Shown here: piece after piece, positions 1-13,109 of the stretch
Position numbering within the stretch: the first letter of the stretch is position 1
How the letters are laid out: each line of letters starts with the position of its first letter
Assembly (NCBI RefSeq): GCF_964204865.1
Contig: NC_135253.1
Span: 4,960,001 to 5,024,000 of the forward strand
From: Styela clava
Taxonomy: Eukaryota
Length of the DNA stretch: 64,000 nucleotides
Direction: 5' to 3'
The notes under the pieces: model-generated
The model's database searches: none
Told to the model about the DNA's origin: nothing
The model's input: the letters and a program-made list of their open reading frames with translations, nothing else
Position numbers and translations under genes: made by a program

Positions 1-766
1 GCCGTCAAAATGATCAGAGATATGGATGAGGGTAAGAACTATAAATTGCCAGTATTCTTAGTTATACCCAGTAGTGTAGATTGATTTCGTTTATCCAAAA
101 TTTTGAATTGGTATCATTTGTGACAAAACAATGTGAGGAAATCAATCAGTTGTATACGTTCTGGCCATTTATCACTTGTGGTTTTTTATCAACTCTAACC
201 CCAAGAAACACATCGTGGATGTCTATCTGTCTACGATTGCTGTTCGTCTCAAATTAGCATGTCGAAAACGTCTCTGTAAAATAGGATTCCCTCTAAAATT
301 ATTTACTATGTAACGTCACTCAAGCCATAGACGATCTTTGCTTTTGTGCTTGTAGAATGAAACAAAGAGAATACAAGAAAATTTAGATTTTGAAATACAA
401 AATTAATTCGTTTTCACGTTCTATAGCCATTTACCTAAGCACAAAATCACGAATAAAGTAAGTTTACTTTACGAGCATTGTGTGCAGAATAAAAACGCTT
501 ACTAATGCTTGATTATAATTTATATTACCAGTATTTTAATTAAACAAATTACACCTATATACTATTAGCGAGGACCCTATTGAAGTGCGCGGTCATCGCG
601 GCTGCATTTGTGCAGTCGCTTAATTAAGCCTGGCCCTGACGAAAGCTAAACTAATTAACTGAAAATTACAATCATTTAATGAGATATTTTACTATATAAT
701 TTCTTGCTCATTTCAGATGAATTCAACCATTTTAGAAATGCTCAGTCCGTGGAAGACTTCGAATAA
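1..766 (+). CDS. Styelin-like precursor, copy A, 5'-truncated by the window; join(<1..31,717..766)
   Basis: Encodes ...AVKMIRDMDE-D-EFNHFRNAQSVEDFE*, identical to copies B and C. Donor gtaaga at 32, acceptor cag at 714-716, TAA at 764-766. Confidence 0.85.
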
Positions 767-2999
767 TCTTCATGATGTTGAATGTTTACAGTGATAGTAG
801 TATAAGAAAAACGAACAAACAAGCAACTTTTTTGATTCAAAATCTTGATTCAAATCTTTGTTTGATTATTTAAGAGAAAGATATCATTCATTGATCAGTA
901 TATCTATGTTTTAATACAGAGTGAATATTTAAACTAACCAAACATATTTTTATCCTTTAATTCAACAAAATTTATGAATATTATTTGGTGTTATTCTTTC
1001 TACTATCATGTCATACATGCTGCTTTGCATCCGAGTATTTTTCGGAATAATAAAAGCTGGAACACAGTTTTGTATGATTTTTTTCATTCAGTGAATCAGA
1101 TTATTTTTCCGATAAAACAAATGCTTTAAAGTTGCGCTATTTCAGTTTATTGCGCAGCTTTGTTTGTGATATTTTGCATCGATATCGAAAGAAAGGTTGT
1201 CGTAAATCAGGGGCGATTATTCACCGTCGGGATTGGTGTCTTTAAATTTCAAGAAAGCCGGATAAGTTGTAAATTTGGAATTAAACGGAAATAAATTGCA
1301 AAAGTGTTATTGTTAATAGTAGGGTAATTTCGCACAAGTTGACTCTTTGGTGTAGTCAATGCATTTATATATTTGAAAAATTCTTTTCCTAGGCTATTTC
1401 CCAACAACAATAGCAATTTAGCAAAACAATCCTTGTTTACACATCGTGCCTTATAAACCCTATCCAAATGTAGACGATTTTATCCTGAAAACTATATTAC
1501 ACTGCGAAAAATTTAAAAACAAATAATTCGTATTGTTCTGGAACAACTCAAATGTCACGGGTGAAAACCCCGAAATCTACATTCGGTAAATTCGGTGATT
1601 CGAAGTTAAGCTTGACGTATCGTTTCGAATAAAACCTCTTGCTAGCATATATGGATCAAGATCGACATCAGGGTTCCGAGTTTAATATAAGCGGACAAAC
1701 CATTGCACAGTCGTTTATATAAATTGTCAATTCCAAACAAGGTTAAAATCTTCGAGCTTGATTTCGTAAAGTTGGAAACAAGTTCTTGCCAGGCTCTAAG
1801 TTCGAGAGATAGTGAATATTACACCCTTTGACTACATAGTGACTAGTAGAAAAAGCACCTATTATAGAGATTCCGTGATTATAGACCGTCTTTACCTGAA
1901 AATGCATTAATCCGTTCCAAGACCCTACAAATCTCGGACATAATATTTGACTGGGTTAAGCAAAGACCGTGGAGAGTGGGAGAATGGCGGCCGGAAAAGG
2001 TGAGGGAAGGCGTTAAAAGATGAAATCTTTATCTCTTTTATTTTGCAGTTTTATTCATTTTATTTTTCTTTAGTTTTAACTGTTACGCGTATCGTAATCT
2101 TCTCAACTGAAACTGAATGAGACTTATTGTACGTATCCGCGGGAAACGAACGGGCTAATGGTATGACAGGCGTGTGCCAGGGCAGGTACCCCGGACTTTA
2201 ATTTTTATATTGCTCAGGGCATCATTCGTTGATTTAAGAAAACAAATGTAATTACGTAGCATCGTCATTATCAAATGAGTGAACCTGACTCCCAAATTAC
2301 CATCTGCCAATAAAAGAGAATTAAGACCGGAAATCTTCTTCTATTTTGCGAGTCGGTGCTGATTTAAATATTTCATGTCAGCTGTTATGATTTTATTTTT
2401 GATTATAAATTAATATTGTCAACCTAAACTGCGCCTACATAATATTTAAGAGCCATTTTGTACGCTCTAAGTTGTAAGAAATGACTTTCATGCCGACTGT
2501 AATTTACTGCCGTGTCGCATACGACTGCCGTCGATTACAATAAAAAATGAAATAATTGTAAAATGTTTTCAAATTCAAACGTTGACGGCGGCGCCAGGAT
2601 ATATGTGCCATATTCGGTATTTTTACAAACACGAACAACGATACTCGAAGTTCGCGATATTCGAATAAGAAAATCGAATTTAGCATCCGTGCTTCAAGCA
2701 CTGCATTAAATTAACCTAGAATAAACAAATATCACTACACTCATTTTTTGTTTTCGTCCGTGGGAAATTTTACGTTAGTCAATATATTTTCACAAAAAGA
2801 ATTCTCGTAAGTTGGATTTTTCGCATGTAGAGCCTTTTGTAGGTAGATTTTCTACTGTAGATTCGAGCACAAAAAATTGTTTTATTTTGTTATTGATCTA
2901 ACGGCATTGTTCGGGGTCCTGGCAGAAATGTTGAGTTAAAACGCAAAATTTCTTAAAGAAAGCTATTTTAATTTATTGCCACACCGACTTTGAACGAAT

Positions 3000-3247
3000 T
3001 CAGTGAGAAGGAAACAAGCTTTTACAACATTGTGTATTTTCCAACAGGATCTTTCTAGCTGGTTTCACCGATATGGCAGTGGCACTCGGATACTGGTATA
3101 GGCTTTGTGGCGCAAGGAGATTGAAATTGCTCGCAAGTTTCAGATTAATTGAACTAAAAGCTCGTTTCGTGGGCACATCACTAAAAATTGGCACTTCTCC
3201 GCGGGCCGCACAGTTATTCTTTGCGGGCCGCAGTTTGCACACCCCTG
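3000..3247 (-). mobile_element. hAT (Charlie/Buster-like) deletion-derivative relic inside the repeat unit
   Basis: Minus strand starts CAGGGGTGTGCAAACTGCGGCCCGC, a Charlie-type terminus. It continues into a frameshifted IRV/ATAISVKPARKILLENTQC...PSH* that resembles Charlie/Buster transposase C-termini. The other end was not found. Confidence 0.55.
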
Positions 3248-4101
3248 CTATAATGGCCTAAATTTAATTTTTCGATGTTTTCGAACCAAAAAAATCAAAC
3301 GTTGAATTGGGTGGGTAATTTTCATTAGATTCATATTATTTAGCCAAAATAGATTTTTTTGCGTAGATGCCATGGAATTTATTTGCGTTGGTCAATTTTC
3401 GCGTGGGAAAAATTCCCCAAATAGGCAAACCTCACAGTAGGTCGTGCCATATGTGAGAAAAACATTAGCTAACTAATACCAGTATTCTAAGATCGTTTCA
3501 TAAGAAATTAATATTTGTGTTAATTAGATTGCTTGTTGCAAATAAGTAAAAACTTGAGCCGTGATTGATTAAATGGTATGATTTGCCTAAAGCATGAAAC
3601 TAGTTCATTTAGGCTTTACTGATTACATTCTTCACAAATCCCAAGGTTACAACTCATCTGTTTATGTAACAACTGAAGTCATTTCAATTTGGAATGAACA
3701 ATATTTTTACAGCCTAAAAATATCTCACGTCACTCACGAATGAGTTTACTCTGGTGGTGATGAGCAATCCACATTGTAATATAATAGGTTAAGCAGAATC
3801 CAACTATGCCGACAATTGTTTGTTTCTATGTATGAGATTAGTTAGTGGAAACTAATTAGGTTTAATATACAGAAATAATTATGATACATAGTTTTCACAT
3901 TATTTTAGCATCATATTTAGAATATGTAACAGAATAACTGACCACATATGTTTCCACATTTAAACGAAGCTGTCAAAAGTTTTACAAAATTCTACCCAAT
4001 TCAACGAAAAAGTAAGGCAAATTAACGCAAATTAATTCGAAACTCTATTGATTTTTTTTTTGTGATGAACTTATTACATATCAGTATGGCCTATGATTTG
4101 T

Positions 4102-4228
4102 ATTTATTGCTTACAAAAGTGCTTCCTGTTTGAAAAATAGGGCATACATATGGATTAAACGAGGATTTATTGCTTACAAAAGTGCTTCCTGTTTAAATAA
4201 TAGGGCATACATATGGATTAAACGAGGA
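4102..4228 (+). repeat. 63-bp tandem duplication just upstream of the TATA box (also 9604-9730)
   Basis: atttattgcttacaaaagtgcttcctgttt...gggcatacatatggattaaacgagg occurs at 4102 and again at 4165. Confidence 0.93.
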
Positions 4229-4276
4229 ATTCCAGATGTTTATGATGACGCCGTTTCCAGGATTGTCCAGAATCTC

Positions 4277-4361
4277 TATAAAAGAGAAGAAAATTTTAGT
4301 CGAGCACCAACCACTCTATCAGAAACTGACGAACGATCTTCTTGAGACAAGGATAAATCAG
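4277..4361 (+). promoter_or_regulatory. TATA box and predicted non-coding first exon of copy B
   Basis: TATAAAA at 4277-4283; strong donor CAG|gtgaga at 4361/4362; pyrimidine tract plus cag acceptor at 4531-4533 (alternative cag 4538-4540) just before the ATG. TSS inferred near 4305-4310. Confidence 0.65.
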
Positions 4362-4541
4362 GTGAGATTTGTAACTTTGTATTCCGTTACACACAGTGGT
4401 AAATCCATTTATACTTTATACGGACAATTCTTTGTTTTTGTCATGAATCTAAGTTGGCATAAATGGTGTAAATTGGGAAGTTTATTTGTTATTCCTCTTA
4501 ATTTTATTCCTCTTTCTCCTTTCGCCGCTGCAGAAAACAGA

Positions 4542-6267
4542 ATGATGAAATCCACAATCATTTTATTATTGGTAGCAATGTTGGTTGTCAACAGCGACGC
4601 CGGTTTTTTCGGGAAAGTTGGTAAAGCCATTAAGAAGACCGTGACCAGCCCGTAAGTCGTGATTTATTTGCGTTTTATCGATATATATTATTTTAATTAG
4701 GGATTGGTTTAAATTTATTTTAATACTTTACGTTAAGACTCATTGACGGTAACACGTTACCTTTTTTAAATGAATATCTATCTTTCGATGTTTCATTTAC
4801 ACTATATTTAAAAATCACAACAACTTCATCAATCACAAATTGGTCAAAATAATCTGTAGAAAACATCCTGATCCAGTTCGACTATGCATATTTCACTTTA
4901 TAAATAATTTGCATAGAATACAATGTGATTGCAGCAGTGACTGATATACTGTTTAACATTATAATCTAGTTAGGTAAAGTAAACTCACAAAATTCTAGAC
5001 TTTGTCCTTTATTTGATTATTTTAGGACGGGGAAAAAAGTGGCCAAAAAGCTTGCTCAGCTTACTGCTAAAGCGGCCCTTTTTGGTATTCTTGGAGATAT
5101 GCGATCTTTAAGAGAATTGGTGAGAATGCTAATTTTAGTTCAACAACCTACTTTGTTTAGCAATATTGGAGAGTGAAATGAACTGTAATTCACTATATAG
5201 CATTAAATTCATACATAACGAGTTACGTGTTTCACATCATCATATATATGCCGACAAGTGTGGAACAGACGAGAATCCAGGGTGGTCGTCGACTGTGATA
5301 TCCCTTGGAAACGAATTCTCAGCTTCTGCGAGTAGAGTTTCATTTTTTTAATATATTTTTTCAGCGTTGTTGTTGAATTTTACTGCGCGTCATATCCAGT
5401 CAAACGGTTGTTGCTTTATGATTAAGATTGCATTGAATATATTGATAAATAGTAATATTTTTTCCCCAAAGGACGATGCTGAAATGAATCAAATGATTGA
5501 GGCCGTCAAAATGATCAGAGATATGGATGAGGGTAAGTACTATAAATTGCCAGTATTCTTAGTTATACCCAGTAGTGTAGATTGATTTCGTTTATCCAAA
5601 ATTTTGAATTGGTATCATTTGTGACAAAACAATGTGAGGAAATCAATCAGTTGTATACGTTCTGGCCATTTATCACTTGTGGTTTTTTATCAACTCTAAC
5701 CCCAAGAAACACATCGTGGATGTCTATCTGTCTACGATTGCTGTTCGTCTCAAATTAGCATGTCGAAAACGTCTCTGTAAAATAGGATTCCCTCTAAAAT
5801 TATTTACTATGTAACGTCACTCAAGCCATAGACGACCTTTGCTTTTGTGCTTGTAGAATGAAACAAAGAGAATACAAGAAAATTTAGATTTTGAAATACA
5901 AAATTAATTCGTTTTCACGTTCTATAGCCATTTACCTAAGCACAAAATCACGAATAAAGTAAGTTTACTTTACGAGCATTGTGTGCAGAATAAAAACGCT
6001 TACTAATGCTTGATTATAATTTATATTACCAGTATTTTAATTAAATAAATTACACCTATATACTATTAGCGAGGACCCTATTGAAGTGCGCGGTCAACGC
6101 GGCTGCATTTGTGCAGTCGCTTAATTAAGCCTGGCCCTGACGAAAGCTAAACTAATTAACTGAAAATTACAATCATTTAATGAGATATTTTACCATATAA
6201 TTTCTTGCTCATTTCAGATGAATTCAACCATTTTAGAAATGCTCAGTCCGTGGAAGACTTCGAATAA
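4542..6267 (+). CDS. Styelin-like antimicrobial peptide precursor, copy B, 104 aa; CDS join(4542..4651,5026..5119,5472..5532,6218..6267)
   Basis: Canonical donors (gtaagt 4652, gtgaga 5120, gtaagt 5533) and acceptors (tag 5025, aag 5471, cag 6217) with compatible phases 2/0/1 give 315 nt ending in TAA. Protein: MMKSTIILLLVAMLVVNSDA-GFFGKVGKAIKKTVTSPTGKKVAKKLAQLTAKAALFGIL-G-DMRSLRELDDAEMNQMIEAVKMIRDMDEDEFNHFRNAQSVEDFE. The signal/GxFGK start, L-G-D-M junction and acidic tail match the styelin C precursor layout as I recall it. Confidence 0.9.
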
Positions 6268-6549
6268 TCTTCATGATGTTGAATGTTTACAGTGATAGTA
6301 GTATAAGAAAAACGAACAAACAAGCAACTTTTTTGATTCAAAATCTTGATTCAAATCTTTGTTTGATTATTTAAGAGAAAGATATTTTTCATTGATCAGT
6401 ATATCTATGTTTTAATACAGAGTGAATATTTAAACTAACCAAACATATTTTTATCCTTTAATTCAACAAAATTTATGAATATTATTTGGTGTTATTCTTT
6501 CTACTATCATGTCATACATGCTGCTTTGCATCCGAGTATTTTTCGGAAT

Positions 6550-6555
6550 AATAAA
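6550..6555 (+). terminator. Probable polyadenylation signal of copy B (equivalents 1049-1054 and 12052-12057)
   Basis: AATAAA ~280 nt after the stop, followed by a GT/T-rich tract (gttttgtatgattttttt). Confidence 0.6.
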
Positions 6556-8500
6556 AGCTGGAACACAGTTTTGTATGATTTTTTTCATTCAGTGAATCAG
6601 ATTATTTTTCCGATAAAACAAATGCTTTAAAGTTGCGCTATTTCAGTTTATTGCGCAGCTTTGTTTGTGATATTTTGCATCGATATCGAAAGAAAGGTTG
6701 TCGTAAATCAGGGGCGATTATTCACCGTCGGGATTGGTGTCTTTAAATTTCAAGAAAGCCGGATAAGTTGTAAATTTGGAATTAAACGGAAATAAATTGC
6801 AAAAGTGTTATTGTTAATAGTAGGGTAATTTCGCACAAGTTGACTCTTTGGTGTAGTCAATGCATTTATATATTTGAAAAATTCTTTTCCTAGGCTATTT
6901 CCCAACAACAATAGCAATTTAGCAAAACAATCCTTGTTTACACATCGTGCCTTATAAACCCTATCCAAATGTAGACGATTTTATCCTGAAAACTATATTA
7001 CACTGCGAAAAATTTAAAAAAAAAAAATTCGTATTGTTCTGGAACAACTCAAATGTCACGGGTGAAAACCCCGAAATCTACATTCGGTAAATTCGGTGAT
7101 TCGAAGTTAAGCTTGACGTATCGTTTCGAATAAAACCTCTTGCTAGCATATATGGATCAAGATCGACATCAGGGTTCCGAGTTTAATATAAGCGGACAAA
7201 CCTTTGCACAGTCGTTTATATAAATTGTCAATTCCAAACAAGGTTCAAATCTTCGAGCTTGATTTCGTAAAGTTGGAAACAAGTTCTTGCCAGGCTCTAA
7301 GTTCGAAAGATAGTGAATATTACACCCTTTGACTACATAGTGACTAGTAGAAAAAGCACCTATTATAGAGATTCCGTGATTATAGACCGTCTTTACCTGA
7401 AAATGCATTAATCCGTTCCAAGACCCTACAAACCTCGGACATAATATTTGACTGGGTTAAGCAAAGACCGTGGAGAGTGGGAGAATGGCGGCCGGAAAAG
7501 GTGAGGGAAGGCGTTAAAAGATGAAATCTTTATCTCTTTTATTTTGCAGTTTTATTCATTTTATTTTTCTTTAGTTTTAACTGTTACGCGTATCGTAATC
7601 TTCTCAACTGAAACTGAATGAGACTTATTGTACGTATCCGCGGGAAACGAACGGGCTAATGGTATGACAGGCGTGTGCCAGGGCAGGTACCCCGGACTTT
7701 AATTTTTATATTGCTCACGGCATCATTCGTTGATTTAAGAAAACAAATGTAATTACGTAGCATCGTCATTATCAAATGAGTGAACCTGACTCCCAAATTA
7801 CCATCTGCCAATAAAAGAGAATTAAGACCGGAAATCTTCTTCTATTTTGCGAGTCGGTGCTGATTTAAATATTTCATGTCAGCTGTTATGATTTTATTTT
7901 TGATTATAAATTAATATTGTCAACCCAAACTGCGCCTACATAATATTTAAGAGCCAGTTTGTACGCTCTAAGTTGTAAGAAATGACTTTCATGCCGACTG
8001 TAATTTACTGCCGTGTCGCATACGACTGCCGTCGATTACAATAAAAAATGAAATAATTGTAAAATGTTTTCAAATTCAAACGTTGACGGCGGCGCCAGGA
8101 TATATGTGCCATATTCGGTATTTTTACAAACACGAACAACGATACTCGAAGTTCGCGATATTCGAATAAGAAAATCGAATTTAGCATCCGTGCTTCAAGC
8201 ACTGCATTAAATTAACCTAGAATAAACAAATATCACTACACTCATTTTTTGTTTTCGTCCGTGGGAAATTTTACGTTAGTCAATATATTTTCACAAAAAG
8301 AATTCTCGTAAGTTGGATTTTTCGCATGTAGAGCCTTTTGTAGGTAGATTTTCTACTGTAGATTCGAGCACAAAAAATTGTTTTATTTTGTTATTGATCT
8401 AACGGCATTGTTCGGGGTCCTGGCAGAAATGTTGAGTTAAAACGCAAAATTTCTTAAAGAAAGCTATTTTAATTTATTGCCACACCGACTTTGAACGAAT

Positions 8501-8748
8501 TCAGTGAGAAGGAAACAAGCTTTTACAACATTGTGTATTTTCCAACAGGATCTTTCTAGCTGGTTTCACCGATATGGCAGTGGCACTCGGATACTGGTAT
8601 AGGCTTTGTGGCGCAAGGAGATTGAAATTGCTCGCAAGTTTCAGATTAATTGAACTAAAAGCTCGTTTCGTGGGCACATCACTAAAAATTGGCACTTCTC
8701 CGCGGGCCGCACAGTTATTCTTTGCGGGCCGCAGTTTGCACACCCCTG
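8501..8748 (-). mobile_element. Second copy of the hAT relic (in unit 2)
   Basis: Same as 3000-3247, shifted by 5501. Confidence 0.55.
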
Positions 8749-9778
8749 CTATAATGGCCTAAATTTAATTTTTCGATGTTTTCGAACCAAAAAAATCAAA
8801 CGTTGAATTGGGTGGGTAATTTTCATTAGATTCATATTATTTAGCCAAAATAGATTTTTTTTGCGTAGATGCCATGGAATTTATTTGCGTTGGTCAATTT
8901 TCGCGTGGGAAAAATTCCCCAAATAGGCAAACCTCACAGTAGGTCGTGCCATATGTGAGAAAAACATTAGCTAACTAATACCAGTATTCTAAGATCGTTT
9001 CATAAGAAATTAATATTTGTGTTAATTAGATTGCTTGTTGCAAATAAGTAAAAACTTGAGCCGTGATTGATTAAATGGTATGATTTGCCTAAAGCATGAA
9101 ACTAGTTCATTTAGGCTTTACTGAATACATTCTTCACAAATCCCAAGGTTACAACTCATCTGTTTATGTAACAACTGAAGTCATTTCAATTTGGAATGAA
9201 CAATATTTTTACAGCCTAAAAATATCTCACGTCACTCACGAATGAGTTTACTCTGGTGGTGATGTGCAATCCACATTGTAATATAATAGGTTAAGCAGAA
9301 TCCAACTATGCCGACAATTGTTTGTTTCTATGTATGAGATTAGTTAGTGGAAACTAATTAGGTTTAATATACAGAAATAATTATGATACATAGTTTTCAC
9401 ATTATTTTAGCATCATATTTAGAATATGTAACAGAATAACTGACCACATATGTTTCCACATTTAAACGAAGCTGTCAAAAGTTTTACAAAATTCTACCCA
9501 ATTCAACGAAAAAGTAAGGCAAATTAACGCAAATTAATTCGAAACTCTATTGATTTTTTTTTTGTGATGAACTTATTACATATCAGTATGGCCTATGATT
9601 TGTATTTATTGCTTACAAAAGTGCTTCCTGTTTGAAAAATAGGGCATACATATGGATTAAACGAGGATTTATTGCTTACAAAAGTGCTTCCTGTTTAAAT
9701 AATAAGGCATACATATGGATTAAACGAGGAATTCCAGATGTTTATGATGACGCCGTTTCCAGGATTGTCCAGAATCTC

Positions 9779-9863
9779 TATAAAAGAGAAGAAAATTTTA
9801 GTCGAGCACCAACCACTCTATCAGAAACTGACGAACGATCTTCTTGAGACAAGGATAAATCAG
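9779..9863 (+). promoter_or_regulatory. TATA box and predicted non-coding first exon of copy C
   Basis: Same sequence as 4277-4361, shifted by 5502. Confidence 0.65.
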
Positions 9864-10043
9864 GTGAGATTTGTAACTTTGTATTCCGTTACACACAGTG
9901 GTAAATCCATTTATACTTTATACGGACAATTCTTTGTTTTTGTCATGAATCTAAGTTGGCATAAATGGTGTAAATTGGGAAGTTTATTTGTTATTCCTCT
10001 TAATTTTATTCCTCTTTCTCCTTTCGCCGCTGCAGAAAACAGA

Positions 10044-11769
10044 ATGATGAAATCCACAATCATTTTATTATTGGTAGCAATGTTGGTTGTCAACAGCGAC
10101 GCCGGTTTTTTCGGGAAAGTTGGTAAAGCCATTAAGAAGACCGTGACCAGCCCGTAAGTCGTGATTTATTTGCGTTTTATCGATATATATTATTTTAATT
10201 AGGGATTGGTTTAAATTTATTTTAATACTTTACGTTAAGACTCATTGACGGTAACACGTTACCTTTTTTAAATGAATATCTATCTTTCGATGTTTCATTT
10301 ACACTATATTTAAAAATCACAACAACTTCATCAATCACAAATTGGTCAAAATAATCTGTAGAAAACATCCTGATCCAGTTCGACTATGCATATTTCACTT
10401 TATAAATAATTTGCATAGAATACAATGTGATTGCAGCAGTGACTGATATACTGTTTAACATTATAATCTAGTTAGGTAAATTAAACTCACAAAATTCTAG
10501 ACTTTGTCCTTTATTTGATTATTTTAGGACGGGGAAAAAAGTGGCCAAAAAGCTTGCTCAGCTTACTGCTAAAGCGGCCCTTTTTGGTATTCTTGGAGAT
10601 ATGCGATCTTTAAGAGAATTGGTGAGAATGCTAATTTTGGTTCAACAACCTACTTTGTTTAGCAATATTGGAGAGTGAAATGAACTGTAATTCACTATAT
10701 AGCATTAAATTCATACATAACGAGTTACGTGTTTCACATCATCATATATATGCCGACAAGTGTGGAACAGACGAGAATCCAGGGTGGTCGTCGACTGTGA
10801 TATCCCATGGAAACGAATTCTCAGCTTCTGCGAGTAGAGTTTCATTTTTTTAATATATTTTTTCAGCGTTGTTGTTGAATTTTACTGCGCGTCATATCCA
10901 GTCAAACGGTTGTTGCTTTATGATTAAGATTGCATTGAATATATTGATAAATAGTAATATTTTTTCCCCAAAGGACGATGCTGAAATGAATCAAATGATT
11001 GAGGCCGTCAAAATGATCAGAGATATGGATGAGGGTAAATACTATAAATTGCCAGTATTCTTAGTTATACCCAGTAGTGTAGATTGATTTCGTTTATCCA
11101 AAATTTTGAATTGGTATCATTTGTGACAAAACAATGTGAGGAAATCAATCAGTTGTATACGTTCTGGCCATTTATCACTTGTGGTTTTTTATCAACTCTA
11201 ACCCCAAGAAACACATCGTGGATGTCTATCTGTCTACGATTGCTGTTCGTCTCAAATTAGCATGTCGAAAACGTCTCTGTAAAATAGGATTCCCTCTAAA
11301 ATTATTTACTATGTAACGTCACTCAAGCCATAGACGACCTTTGCTTTTGTGCTTGTAGAATGAAACAAAGAGAATACAAGAAAATTTAGATTTTGAAATA
11401 CAAAATTAATTCGTTTTCACGTTCTATAGCCATTTACCTAAGCACAAAATCACGAATAAAGTAAGTTTACTTTACGAGCATTGTGTGCAGAATAAAAACG
11501 CTTACTAATGCTTGATTATAATTTATATTACCAGTATTTTAATTAAATAAATTACACCTATATACTATTAGCGAGGACCCTATTGAAGTGCGCGGTCAAC
11601 GCGGCTGCATTTGTGCAGTCGCTTAATTAAGCCTGGCCCTGACGAAAGCTAAACTAATTAACTGAAAATTACAATCATTTAATGAGATATTTCACCATAT
11701 AATTTCTTGCTCATTTCAGATGAATTCAACCATTTTAGAAATGCTCAGTCCGTGGAAGACTTCGAATAA
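10044..11769 (+). CDS. Styelin-like antimicrobial peptide precursor, copy C; CDS join(10044..10153,10528..10621,10974..11034,11720..11769)
   Basis: Coding exons read identical to copy B at +5502. The last donor is gtaaat (11035) rather than gtaagt. Confidence 0.88.
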
Positions 11770-13109
11770 TCTTCATGATGTTGAATGTTTACAGTGATAG
11801 TAGTATAAGAAAAACAAACAAACAAGCAACTTTTTTGATTCAAAATCTTGATTCAAATCTTTGTTTGATTATTTAAGAGAAAGATATTTTTCATTGATCA
11901 GTATATCTATGTTTTAATACAGAGTGAATATTTAAACTAACCAAACATATTTTTATCCTTTAATTCAACAAAATTTATGAATATTATTTGGTGTTATTCT
12001 TTCTACTATCATGTCATACATGCTGCTTTGCATCCGAGTATTTTTCGGAATAATAAAAGCTGGAACACAGTTTTGTATGATTTTTTTCATTCAGTGAATC
12101 AGATTATTTTTCCGATAAAACAAATGCTTTAAAGTTGCGCTATTTCAGTTTATTGCGCAGCTTTGTTTGTGATATTTTGCATCGATATCGAAAGAATGGT
12201 TGTCGTAAATCAGGGGCGATTATTCACCGTCGGGATTGGTGTCTTTAAATTTCAAGAAAGCCGGATAAGTTGTAAATTTGGAATTGAACGGAAATAAATT
12301 GCAAAAGTGTTATTGTTAATAGTAGGGTAATTTCGCACAAGTTGACTCTTTGGTGTAGTCAATGCATTTATATATTTGAAAAATTCTTTTCCTAGGCTAT
12401 TTCCCAACAACAATAGCAATTTAGCAAAACAATCCTTGTTTACACATCGTGCCTTATACACCCTATCCAAATGTAGACGATTTTATCCTGAAAACTATGT
12501 TACACTGCAAAAAATTAAAAACAAATAATTCGTATTGTTCTGGAACAACTCAAATGTCACCGGTGAAAACCCGGAAATCTACGTTATTCGGGGATTGGAA
12601 GTTAATCCGAATCAAAATCCACTTTTCAGCTTGACGTATCGTTTCGAATAAAACCTCTTGCTAGCATATAGATCAAGATCGACATCAGGGTTCCGAGTTT
12701 AATATAAGCGGACGAACCATTGCACAGTCGTTTATATAAATTCTTAATTCCAAACAAGAAGAGGTTTAAATTTTCGAGCTTGATTTCCTAAAGTTGGAAA
12801 CAAGTTCTTGCCAGGCTCCAAGGCCGAAAGATAGTGAATATTATACTCTTTGACTACATAGTGACTAGTAGAAATAGCATTTATTATAGAGATACGAAGT
12901 TTTTTTTTCATCTTCAAAATCCGAATATGCAACTTCGCTTCCCAATTTAACGAAAACTCCCGACTTTAGACCTAAATGCTAAACATTAGAATCTTGCGGT
13001 TTCCACAATACGTTAGGTGTCAGTGTAGCACAACAACGTACTTTGCAAAAATACCGGTTTTCCGTGCAATTTTCGTTTAATTTATCCGCGGCATATCGAC
13101 CCTCTACAA

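Follow-up and report, generated by a model that had tools for sequence, protein, structure and literature searches.

The window, by which we mean the whole 64,000-nucleotide stretch of Styela clava DNA under study (contig 4, NC_135253.1, positions 4,960,001 to 5,024,000 of the forward strand), begins inside a tandem array of three units, each of which carries one copy of a small gene with four coding exons. We refer to these copies as F0, F1 and F2; F1 is the middle gene of the array and the main subject of this analysis. The features of the array and of F1 are listed below, with positions counted along the window unless they are preceded by C4, which denotes contig 4 coordinates.

1 to 12893, plus strand: window part of the tandem array, made of three 5.5-kb units that are 98.7-99.0% identical; the whole array occupies C4:4956366-4972893
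C4:4959041-4959618, plus strand: exons 1-2 of copy F0, just upstream of the window
1 to 766, plus strand: 3′ part of copy F0, with the end of exon 3 at 1-31 and exon 4 at 717-766
4277 to 4284, plus strand: TATA box TATAAAAG of F1; the identical motif is found at the same aligned position upstream of all nine intact paralogs
4307 to 4361, plus strand: putative non-coding 5′UTR exon, with an approximate start about 30 nt past the TATA box, ending at the donor ATCAG/GTGAGA
4362 to 4533, plus strand: putative 5′UTR intron (GT...AG), with a strong polypyrimidine tract and then CAG, 8 nt before the ATG
4542 to 4651, plus strand: coding exon 1, signal peptide (20 amino acids) and the opening 16 2/3 codons for the mature peptide; homologous exons occur in 11 other contig 4 loci
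5026 to 5119, plus strand: coding exon 2, remainder of the mature peptide, putative Gly amide donor and start of the propiece (D-M-R-S-L-R-E-L)
5472 to 5532, plus strand: coding exon 3, acidic propiece; no other exon of the family is as well conserved, with 75-100% identity across 11 contig 4 copies
6218 to 6267, plus strand: coding exon 4, last residues of the acidic propiece, then the TAA stop codon
6550 to 6555, plus strand: polyadenylation signal AATAAA, 283 nt past the F1 stop codon
10044 to 11769, plus strand: copy F2, exons at 10044-10153, 10528-10621, 10974-11034 and 11720-11769, with a coding sequence identical to that of F1

Mechanical splicing of the F1 coding model (window 4542-6267, plus strand) removes three introns, all of them GT...AG, in phases 2, 0 and 1 and each with a good polypyrimidine tract before its acceptor, and leaves a coding sequence of 315 nt that contains no internal stop codon and specifies a precursor of 104 amino acids. 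This confirmed the central claim of an earlier, sequence-only reading of the locus, namely that four exons join in phase to encode a signal peptide, a peptide of 39 amino acids with nine lysines and no acidic residue, a glycine and an acidic propiece. The exon model of that reading also holds, with one boundary corrected: exon 1 ends at 4651, since intron 1 splits a proline codon (CC/G), and not after the whole codon. The precursor consists, in order, of a signal peptide of 20 amino acids whose predicted cleavage site is a small-x-small motif (S-D-A/G), the 39-amino-acid peptide, the glycine, and an acidic propiece of 44 amino acids with a net charge of -9. The 39-amino-acid peptide has nine Lys, no Asp or Glu and no Cys, and carries a net charge of +9; it starts with G-F-F-G-K, and an L-G-D-M junction is found at its C-terminal side. 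It is rich in Lys, Ala and Gly, contains no Trp, Tyr or His, and is hinged at its center by Ser-Pro-Thr-Gly.

Eight other intact paralogs yield the same four-exon model with identical splice sites, which places the F1 model beyond chance. Two other ways of reading the coding region were set aside. An open reading frame of 139 amino acids (4236-4655) crosses the 5′UTR exon and intron, and the matching frame in the paralogs is only 43-57 amino acids long. An in-frame acceptor at 4999, 27 nt upstream of exon 2 (window 4999-5025), would add nine residues to the mature peptide, is supported by none of the paralogs, and is weaker than the acceptor at 5025. We consider F1 very probably to be a real, spliced and selected S. 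clava gene that encodes a predicted secreted, Lys-rich cationic peptide.

In addition to the TATA box, the splice donor of the 5′UTR exon (4362 in F1), about 80 nt past that box, is conserved in 9 of 9 intact paralogs, and a polyadenylation signal lies 255-283 nt past the stop codon in all nine. The conserved TATA box and donor, together with the F1 acceptor, make a non-coding first exon probable; this acceptor, at 4533, could alternatively serve for trans-splicing, i.e., as a spliced-leader acceptor. A sigma-70 promoter scan of the locus was set aside as irrelevant to a eukaryote. Just upstream of the TATA box, a segment of 63-64 bp is tandemly duplicated with 97% identity (window 4102-4228), and it takes in part of a promoter-proximal block that is conserved across all paralogs. 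This duplication is present in the F copies only, the other two examples being at window 9604-9730 and C4:4958601-4958727.

Using tblastn with the four F1 exon peptides over 194 kb of contig 4, followed by exon-by-exon modeling, we identified a cluster of twelve four-exon loci between 4,844,732 and 4,971,769. Nine of these loci are intact (A1, A2, A3, B2, C1, D1, F0, F1 and F2), and three are degenerate, with B1 lacking its ATG, A4 lacking exon 3 and X1 lacking exon 2. Across the paralogs, conservation of the signal peptide and acidic tail contrasts with a cationic core that is hypervariable both in sequence and in length (22-39 residues), a pattern of conserved signal and propiece around a hypervariable mature region by which multigene families of antimicrobial peptides are recognized. 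The F-type exon 2 peptide occurs three times in the genome, each time inside the F array, and the F0 and F1 proteins differ at three residues, every one of them within the mature peptide.

Individual members of the cluster show further variations. The type A and type C paralogs contain one Cys only, which is residue 10 of the mature peptide (G-W-L-G-K-T-V-K-I-C-K-K), and these single-Cys loci are found at L017:4732-5880, C4:4853415-4854563, C4:4882349-4883496 and C4:4897606-4898738; by analogy with halocidin and dicynthaurin of tunicates, the lone Cys could allow disulfide-linked dimers. The type B paralog (C4:4870709-4871823) encodes a shorter peptide of 22 residues with a charge of +4 and a Gly donor, comparable in size to a clavanin, and in its twin B1 (C4:4862080) the start codon ATG has become AGG. 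Of the decayed members A4 and X1, located at C4:4904003-4905070 and 4909680-4913870, the first has acidic substitutions within the peptide and the second retains exons 1, 3 and 4, with exon 2 not found.

The distribution of changes along the precursor is uneven. Across the paralogs, dN/dS is 0.15-0.3 for the signal peptide and propiece and 0.5-1.7 for the mature part. Between F1 and D1, 32% of the mature-coding bases differ, compared to 15% in the introns (Fisher P=1.3e-5), and the signal peptide and propiece, at 6.9%, have diverged more slowly than the introns (P=9e-4); by exon, nucleotide identity is 98% for exon 3 and 92% for exon 4, compared to 84% for the introns. The pair A1-C1 shows mature-coding divergence of 11.4% against 3.5% in the introns (P=1e-3), with the same excess for A3-C1. 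The recent duplicates show four coding differences among them, each a non-synonymous change within the mature peptide. Gene conversion that homogenizes the flanks, instead of positive selection, could account for part of the contrast between them and the fast core. Taken on its sequence, the contig 4 cluster is very probably a separate, fast-evolving and undescribed gene family related to the styelins.

Styelins are C-amidated, salt-tolerant antimicrobial peptides of hemocytes (PMC10608444), with the modified residues bromo-Trp, DOPA and hydroxy-Lys/Arg (PMC10608444, PMC9966394). The sequence-only reading had given GWFGK or GWLRK as their start and L-G-D-M as their junction, and we found this to be so for styelin D and E (O18495, O18496) and for a styelin C-like gene in the genome. 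It had also taken F1 for a divergent, longer member of the styelin family, which our comparison bears out in part. Like styelins C, D and E (PF17562; O18495, O18496), F1 comes from the same species and shows the same order of signal, cationic peptide, Gly and acidic propiece, four coding exons, a signal peptide 41% identical to theirs, a G-[WF]-[FL]-x-K motif right after the signal cleavage site, in which F1 has Phe for Trp at position 2 (G-[WF]-[FL]-G-K as shared with the genomic styelin genes), and the L-G-D-M junction. In contrast, the mature styelins are 31-32 amino acids long, rich in Phe, Tyr and Trp, and contain a K-H-K motif (PMC10608444, PMC9966394), whereas the F1 peptide has 39 amino acids and no His-Lys-His; the styelin propiece is 27 amino acids long compared to 44 in F1; and the F1 genes form part of a 12-locus tandem cluster on a different chromosome. 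Since the F1 peptide has no Trp, Tyr or His, it offers no sites for the bromo-Trp and DOPA modifications of styelins.

Gene structure gives a similarly mixed picture. The genome contains three true styelin genes at C10:16312499-16341875 (16.31-16.34 Mb of contig 10, i.e., another chromosome than F1), one of them styelin C-like, one a variant, and the third found by means of the Pfam model. The gene at C10:16333887, on the minus strand, has a mature start of G-W-F-S-K-V-A-S-S, unlike the styelin D, E and D-like entries that the database search returned. The coding region of the styelin genes is divided into four exons by a phase-2 intron that splits mature codon 16, a phase-0 intron right after G-D-M, and a phase-0 third intron before the last five codons. 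Intron 1 of F1, at residue 17, is of the same phase and within one residue of the same place; intron 2 is likewise of phase 0, but lies six codons past G-D-M; and intron 3 is of phase 1, compared to phase 0 in the styelins, and is preceded by an extra conserved acidic exon.

Similarity between F1 and the styelins is significant over the whole precursor (local alignment z=10.7 against shuffles) and falls to 4.4 when the signal peptide is removed. By part, it is clear for the signal peptide (z 6.9) and marginal for the mature peptide (21-26% identity, z 0.8-2.4) and the tail (z 1.5-2.0). Against a styelin HMM that we built, F1 reaches 21 bits, most of them contributed by the signal peptide, and in the same alignment the R-D-M-D-E-D-E-F at the exon 3/4 boundary of F1 echoes the styelin G-D-M-T-D-E-E-F. 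The Pfam Styelin model (PF17562), with a membership cut-off of 27 bits, scores styelin D-like and styelin E at 134-139 bits but does not match full-length D1 or F1 exons 1 and 2 at E<=10, and in a six-frame search of the whole genome it matches only the three contig 10 genes and none on contig 4. As PF17562 matches only these styelin genes, we class the contig 4 family as styelin-related, and not as styelin. Its layout, four exons, phase-2 intron and terminal motifs make it kin to the styelins in design, and probably also in descent.

Relatives were also found elsewhere. A second cluster with the same exon plan, a related propiece and at least five loci lies on contig 10 at 8.84-8.95 Mb (regions C10:8840001-8860000, 8905001-8915000 and 8947001-8957000). 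Its signal peptides start with M-K-T-A-I-I-L and its peptides with G-G-W-G-S-F or G-W-G-F-G-R-K; the junction is G-D-V-R-A-I-R-E-M, and exon 3 is 50-60% identical to that of the contig 4 family. Botryllin of Botryllus schlosseri is likewise a sequence-mined, cationic peptide of 37 amino acids with a styelin-like precursor from a styelid ascidian, but it differs, by its description, in a precursor of 158 amino acids, a G-W-Y-N-K-H-K start and the retention of the styelin K-H-K motif (PMC9966394). Synthetic botryllin kills bacteria and yeast (PMC9966394), which demonstrates that the route from a predicted sequence to an active peptide works. The “Cla-H” of a 2026 Styela paper is described as a His-tagged version of “Cla”, a peptide chosen from earlier work.

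Cecropins and pleurocidin-type peptides (PF00272, PF08107) resemble F1 in being Cys-free, Lys-rich and often amidated, with the helix-hinge-helix form that is predicted in F1, and pleurocidin precursors also have an acidic propiece; there is no match at the sequence level, making this a likeness of design and not of demonstrable descent. A Pfam search with F1 exons 1-2 and with D1 returned no match to Cecropin PF00272, Pleurocidin PF08107 or any other antimicrobial family. A language-model (Atlas) search placed D1 nearest to a pleurocidin-like cluster with a score of 0.76, which we treat as a lead only, and the same search with F1 exon 2 gave no match. The hydrophobic moment of the F1 peptide is 0.51 over residues 1-16, and its 18-residue maximum of 0.48 is reached by 8-10% of shuffled sequences; the styelin C-like peptide has a moment of 0.57. 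A single-sequence AlphaFold2 model of D1 had a pLDDT of 44.5 and was unusable.

The paralog D1 (C4:4919788-4921699) links the cluster to existing annotation. Our spliced D1 model, of 100 amino acids, is identical to the RefSeq protein XP_077967921.1 (“uncharacterized protein LOC144422059”), so that the NCBI pipeline independently predicts the same four-exon plan. D1 shares the cluster and this plan with F1, and its signal peptide and propiece are 70% and 91% identical to those of F1, but its mature peptide is only 38% identical, begins with G-Q-F-K, and lacks the Gly amide donor ahead of D-M. This RefSeq-derived protein is the only product of the nine intact contig 4 genes that we found among proteins: an F-type protein was not found in the collection of 5.8 billion proteins that includes D1. 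The queries were the open frame 4236-4652 (residues 100-139 scored), the D1 protein, and the open frame 4970-5173 (residues 11-50 scored), and the propiece shared by the D1 query would have caught any full-length family member in the collection. The absence of an F-type protein where D1 is present means that NCBI may have had no transcript support for F. When gene copies are identical, reads map to several of them, a known cause of missing automatic gene models.

Database searches were run exon by exon or by open frame, with the joined precursor used for counting, alignment and the local HMM. A PDB sequence search with F1 exon 1 and exon 2 gave no match, and strings of 8-9 residues from the F, A and C peptides were not found in 8 million papers. 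A profile search with exon 1 over 1.84 billion representatives recovered only the styelin D/E cluster, D1, one styelin-like fragment of 44 amino acids, and long repetitive proteins that we take as noise. That fragment is an open frame on a 530-bp ENA contig with a styelin-like signal peptide and a G-W-F-R-G start, which could make it a relative of the styelins, whether of another tunicate or in an environmental sample. Within the proteins, PDB entries and papers searched, the F1 mature sequence is unreported, in agreement with the earlier description of it as unfamiliar.

We consider it probable that F0, F1 and F2 are tandem copies of a functional gene for a secreted prepropeptide, the source of a membrane-active, styelin-related peptide whose relatives are the contig 4 family and its sister cluster on contig 10. 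For F1, transcription, processing sites, amidation, helical structure, membrane activity and tissue are all predicted, and the steps would be as follows. F1 would be transcribed from its TATA promoter, and the message would be spliced from five exons, one 5′UTR and four coding. Signal peptidase would cut after Ala20 of the precursor, and the propiece of net charge -9 would balance the +9 peptide and keep it harmless while the charge-neutral propeptide is stored. The bond between Gly and Asp of L-G-D-M would next be cut, as in styelins, leaving the Gly to become a C-terminal amide on Leu39, and the resulting 39-residue helix-hinge-helix, bent at Ser-Pro-Thr-Gly, would bind and permeabilize anionic microbial membranes, as cecropins and styelins do. 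The calculated monoisotopic mass of this amidated product is 4014.46 Da for F1 and F2 and 3984.42 Da for F0. By this analogy an antimicrobial role is a plausible candidate function for the F1 product.

It is rather unlikely, in our estimate, that the peptide is expressed and secreted but has a main role other than killing microbes, either as a hormone-like amidated signal or as a cytolytic or cytotoxic effector that serves allorecognition, inflammation or antifouling. Neuropeptides, too, typically have a Gly amide donor, the amphipathicity of F1 is only moderate, and styelins themselves are hemolytic and cytotoxic toward eukaryotic cells (PMC10608444). Against such a role, the layout and gene structure are common to proven antimicrobial peptides and no dibasic processing sites flank the F1 peptide, and many copies with a hypervariable core between conserved flanks are usual for defense peptides and toxins but unusual for hormones.

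We regard as improbable the view that the F copies are silent or nearly silent young duplicates, or partly an assembly artifact, with only other paralogs such as D1 in use. The F precursor is indeed missing from the protein collection that contains the RefSeq D1 of the same cluster, the cluster has decayed members (B1, A4 and X1), and among units that are 99% identical intactness says little about age. Yet the introns of F have diverged by 15% from those of D1, and the reading frame, the splice sites, the TATA box, the polyadenylation signal and exons 3 and 4 have all been retained, which argues that the F lineage has long been under purifying selection.

Finally, that F1 is a divergent true styelin, i.e., a further member beside styelins A-E, is highly improbable: the precursor order, the G-F-F-G-K start, the L-G-D-M junction, the phase and place of intron 1, and the significant full-length similarity would fit, but PF17562 matches contig 10 genes only and none in the contig 4 family, the genes lie on another chromosome, the propiece of 44 amino acids is drawn from two and a half exons compared to 27 amino acids in styelins, the phase of intron 3 differs, Trp, Tyr and His are absent, and mature identity is 21-26%.

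Automatic annotation misses most small genes of the contig 4 cluster, as illustrated by the one in nine intact genes that is represented in the protein collection. Few animal antimicrobial peptides remain active in high salt as the styelins do, and natural styelin D depends on unusual modified residues. We put forward tentatively, as a possibility that falls somewhat short of probable, that the contig 4 cluster is a chordate host-defense locus in which mature codons outpace introns and the signal peptide and propiece stay constant, that it may supply structurally new, Lys-rich and amidated peptides without Trp or Tyr (types A, B, C, D and F) that are active at sea-water salinity without the modifications of styelin D, and that F may have been tripled recently for dosage. 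If this is true, styelin relatives made of ordinary residues and an amide would be easy to synthesize and assay, in a family that ranges from 22 to 39 amino acids and includes single-Cys members. Frog skin peptides and cone-snail toxins show accelerated divergence of the mature peptide, and the contig 4 locus is a clean natural example of such divergence confined to mature-peptide codons, now in the sister group of the vertebrates.
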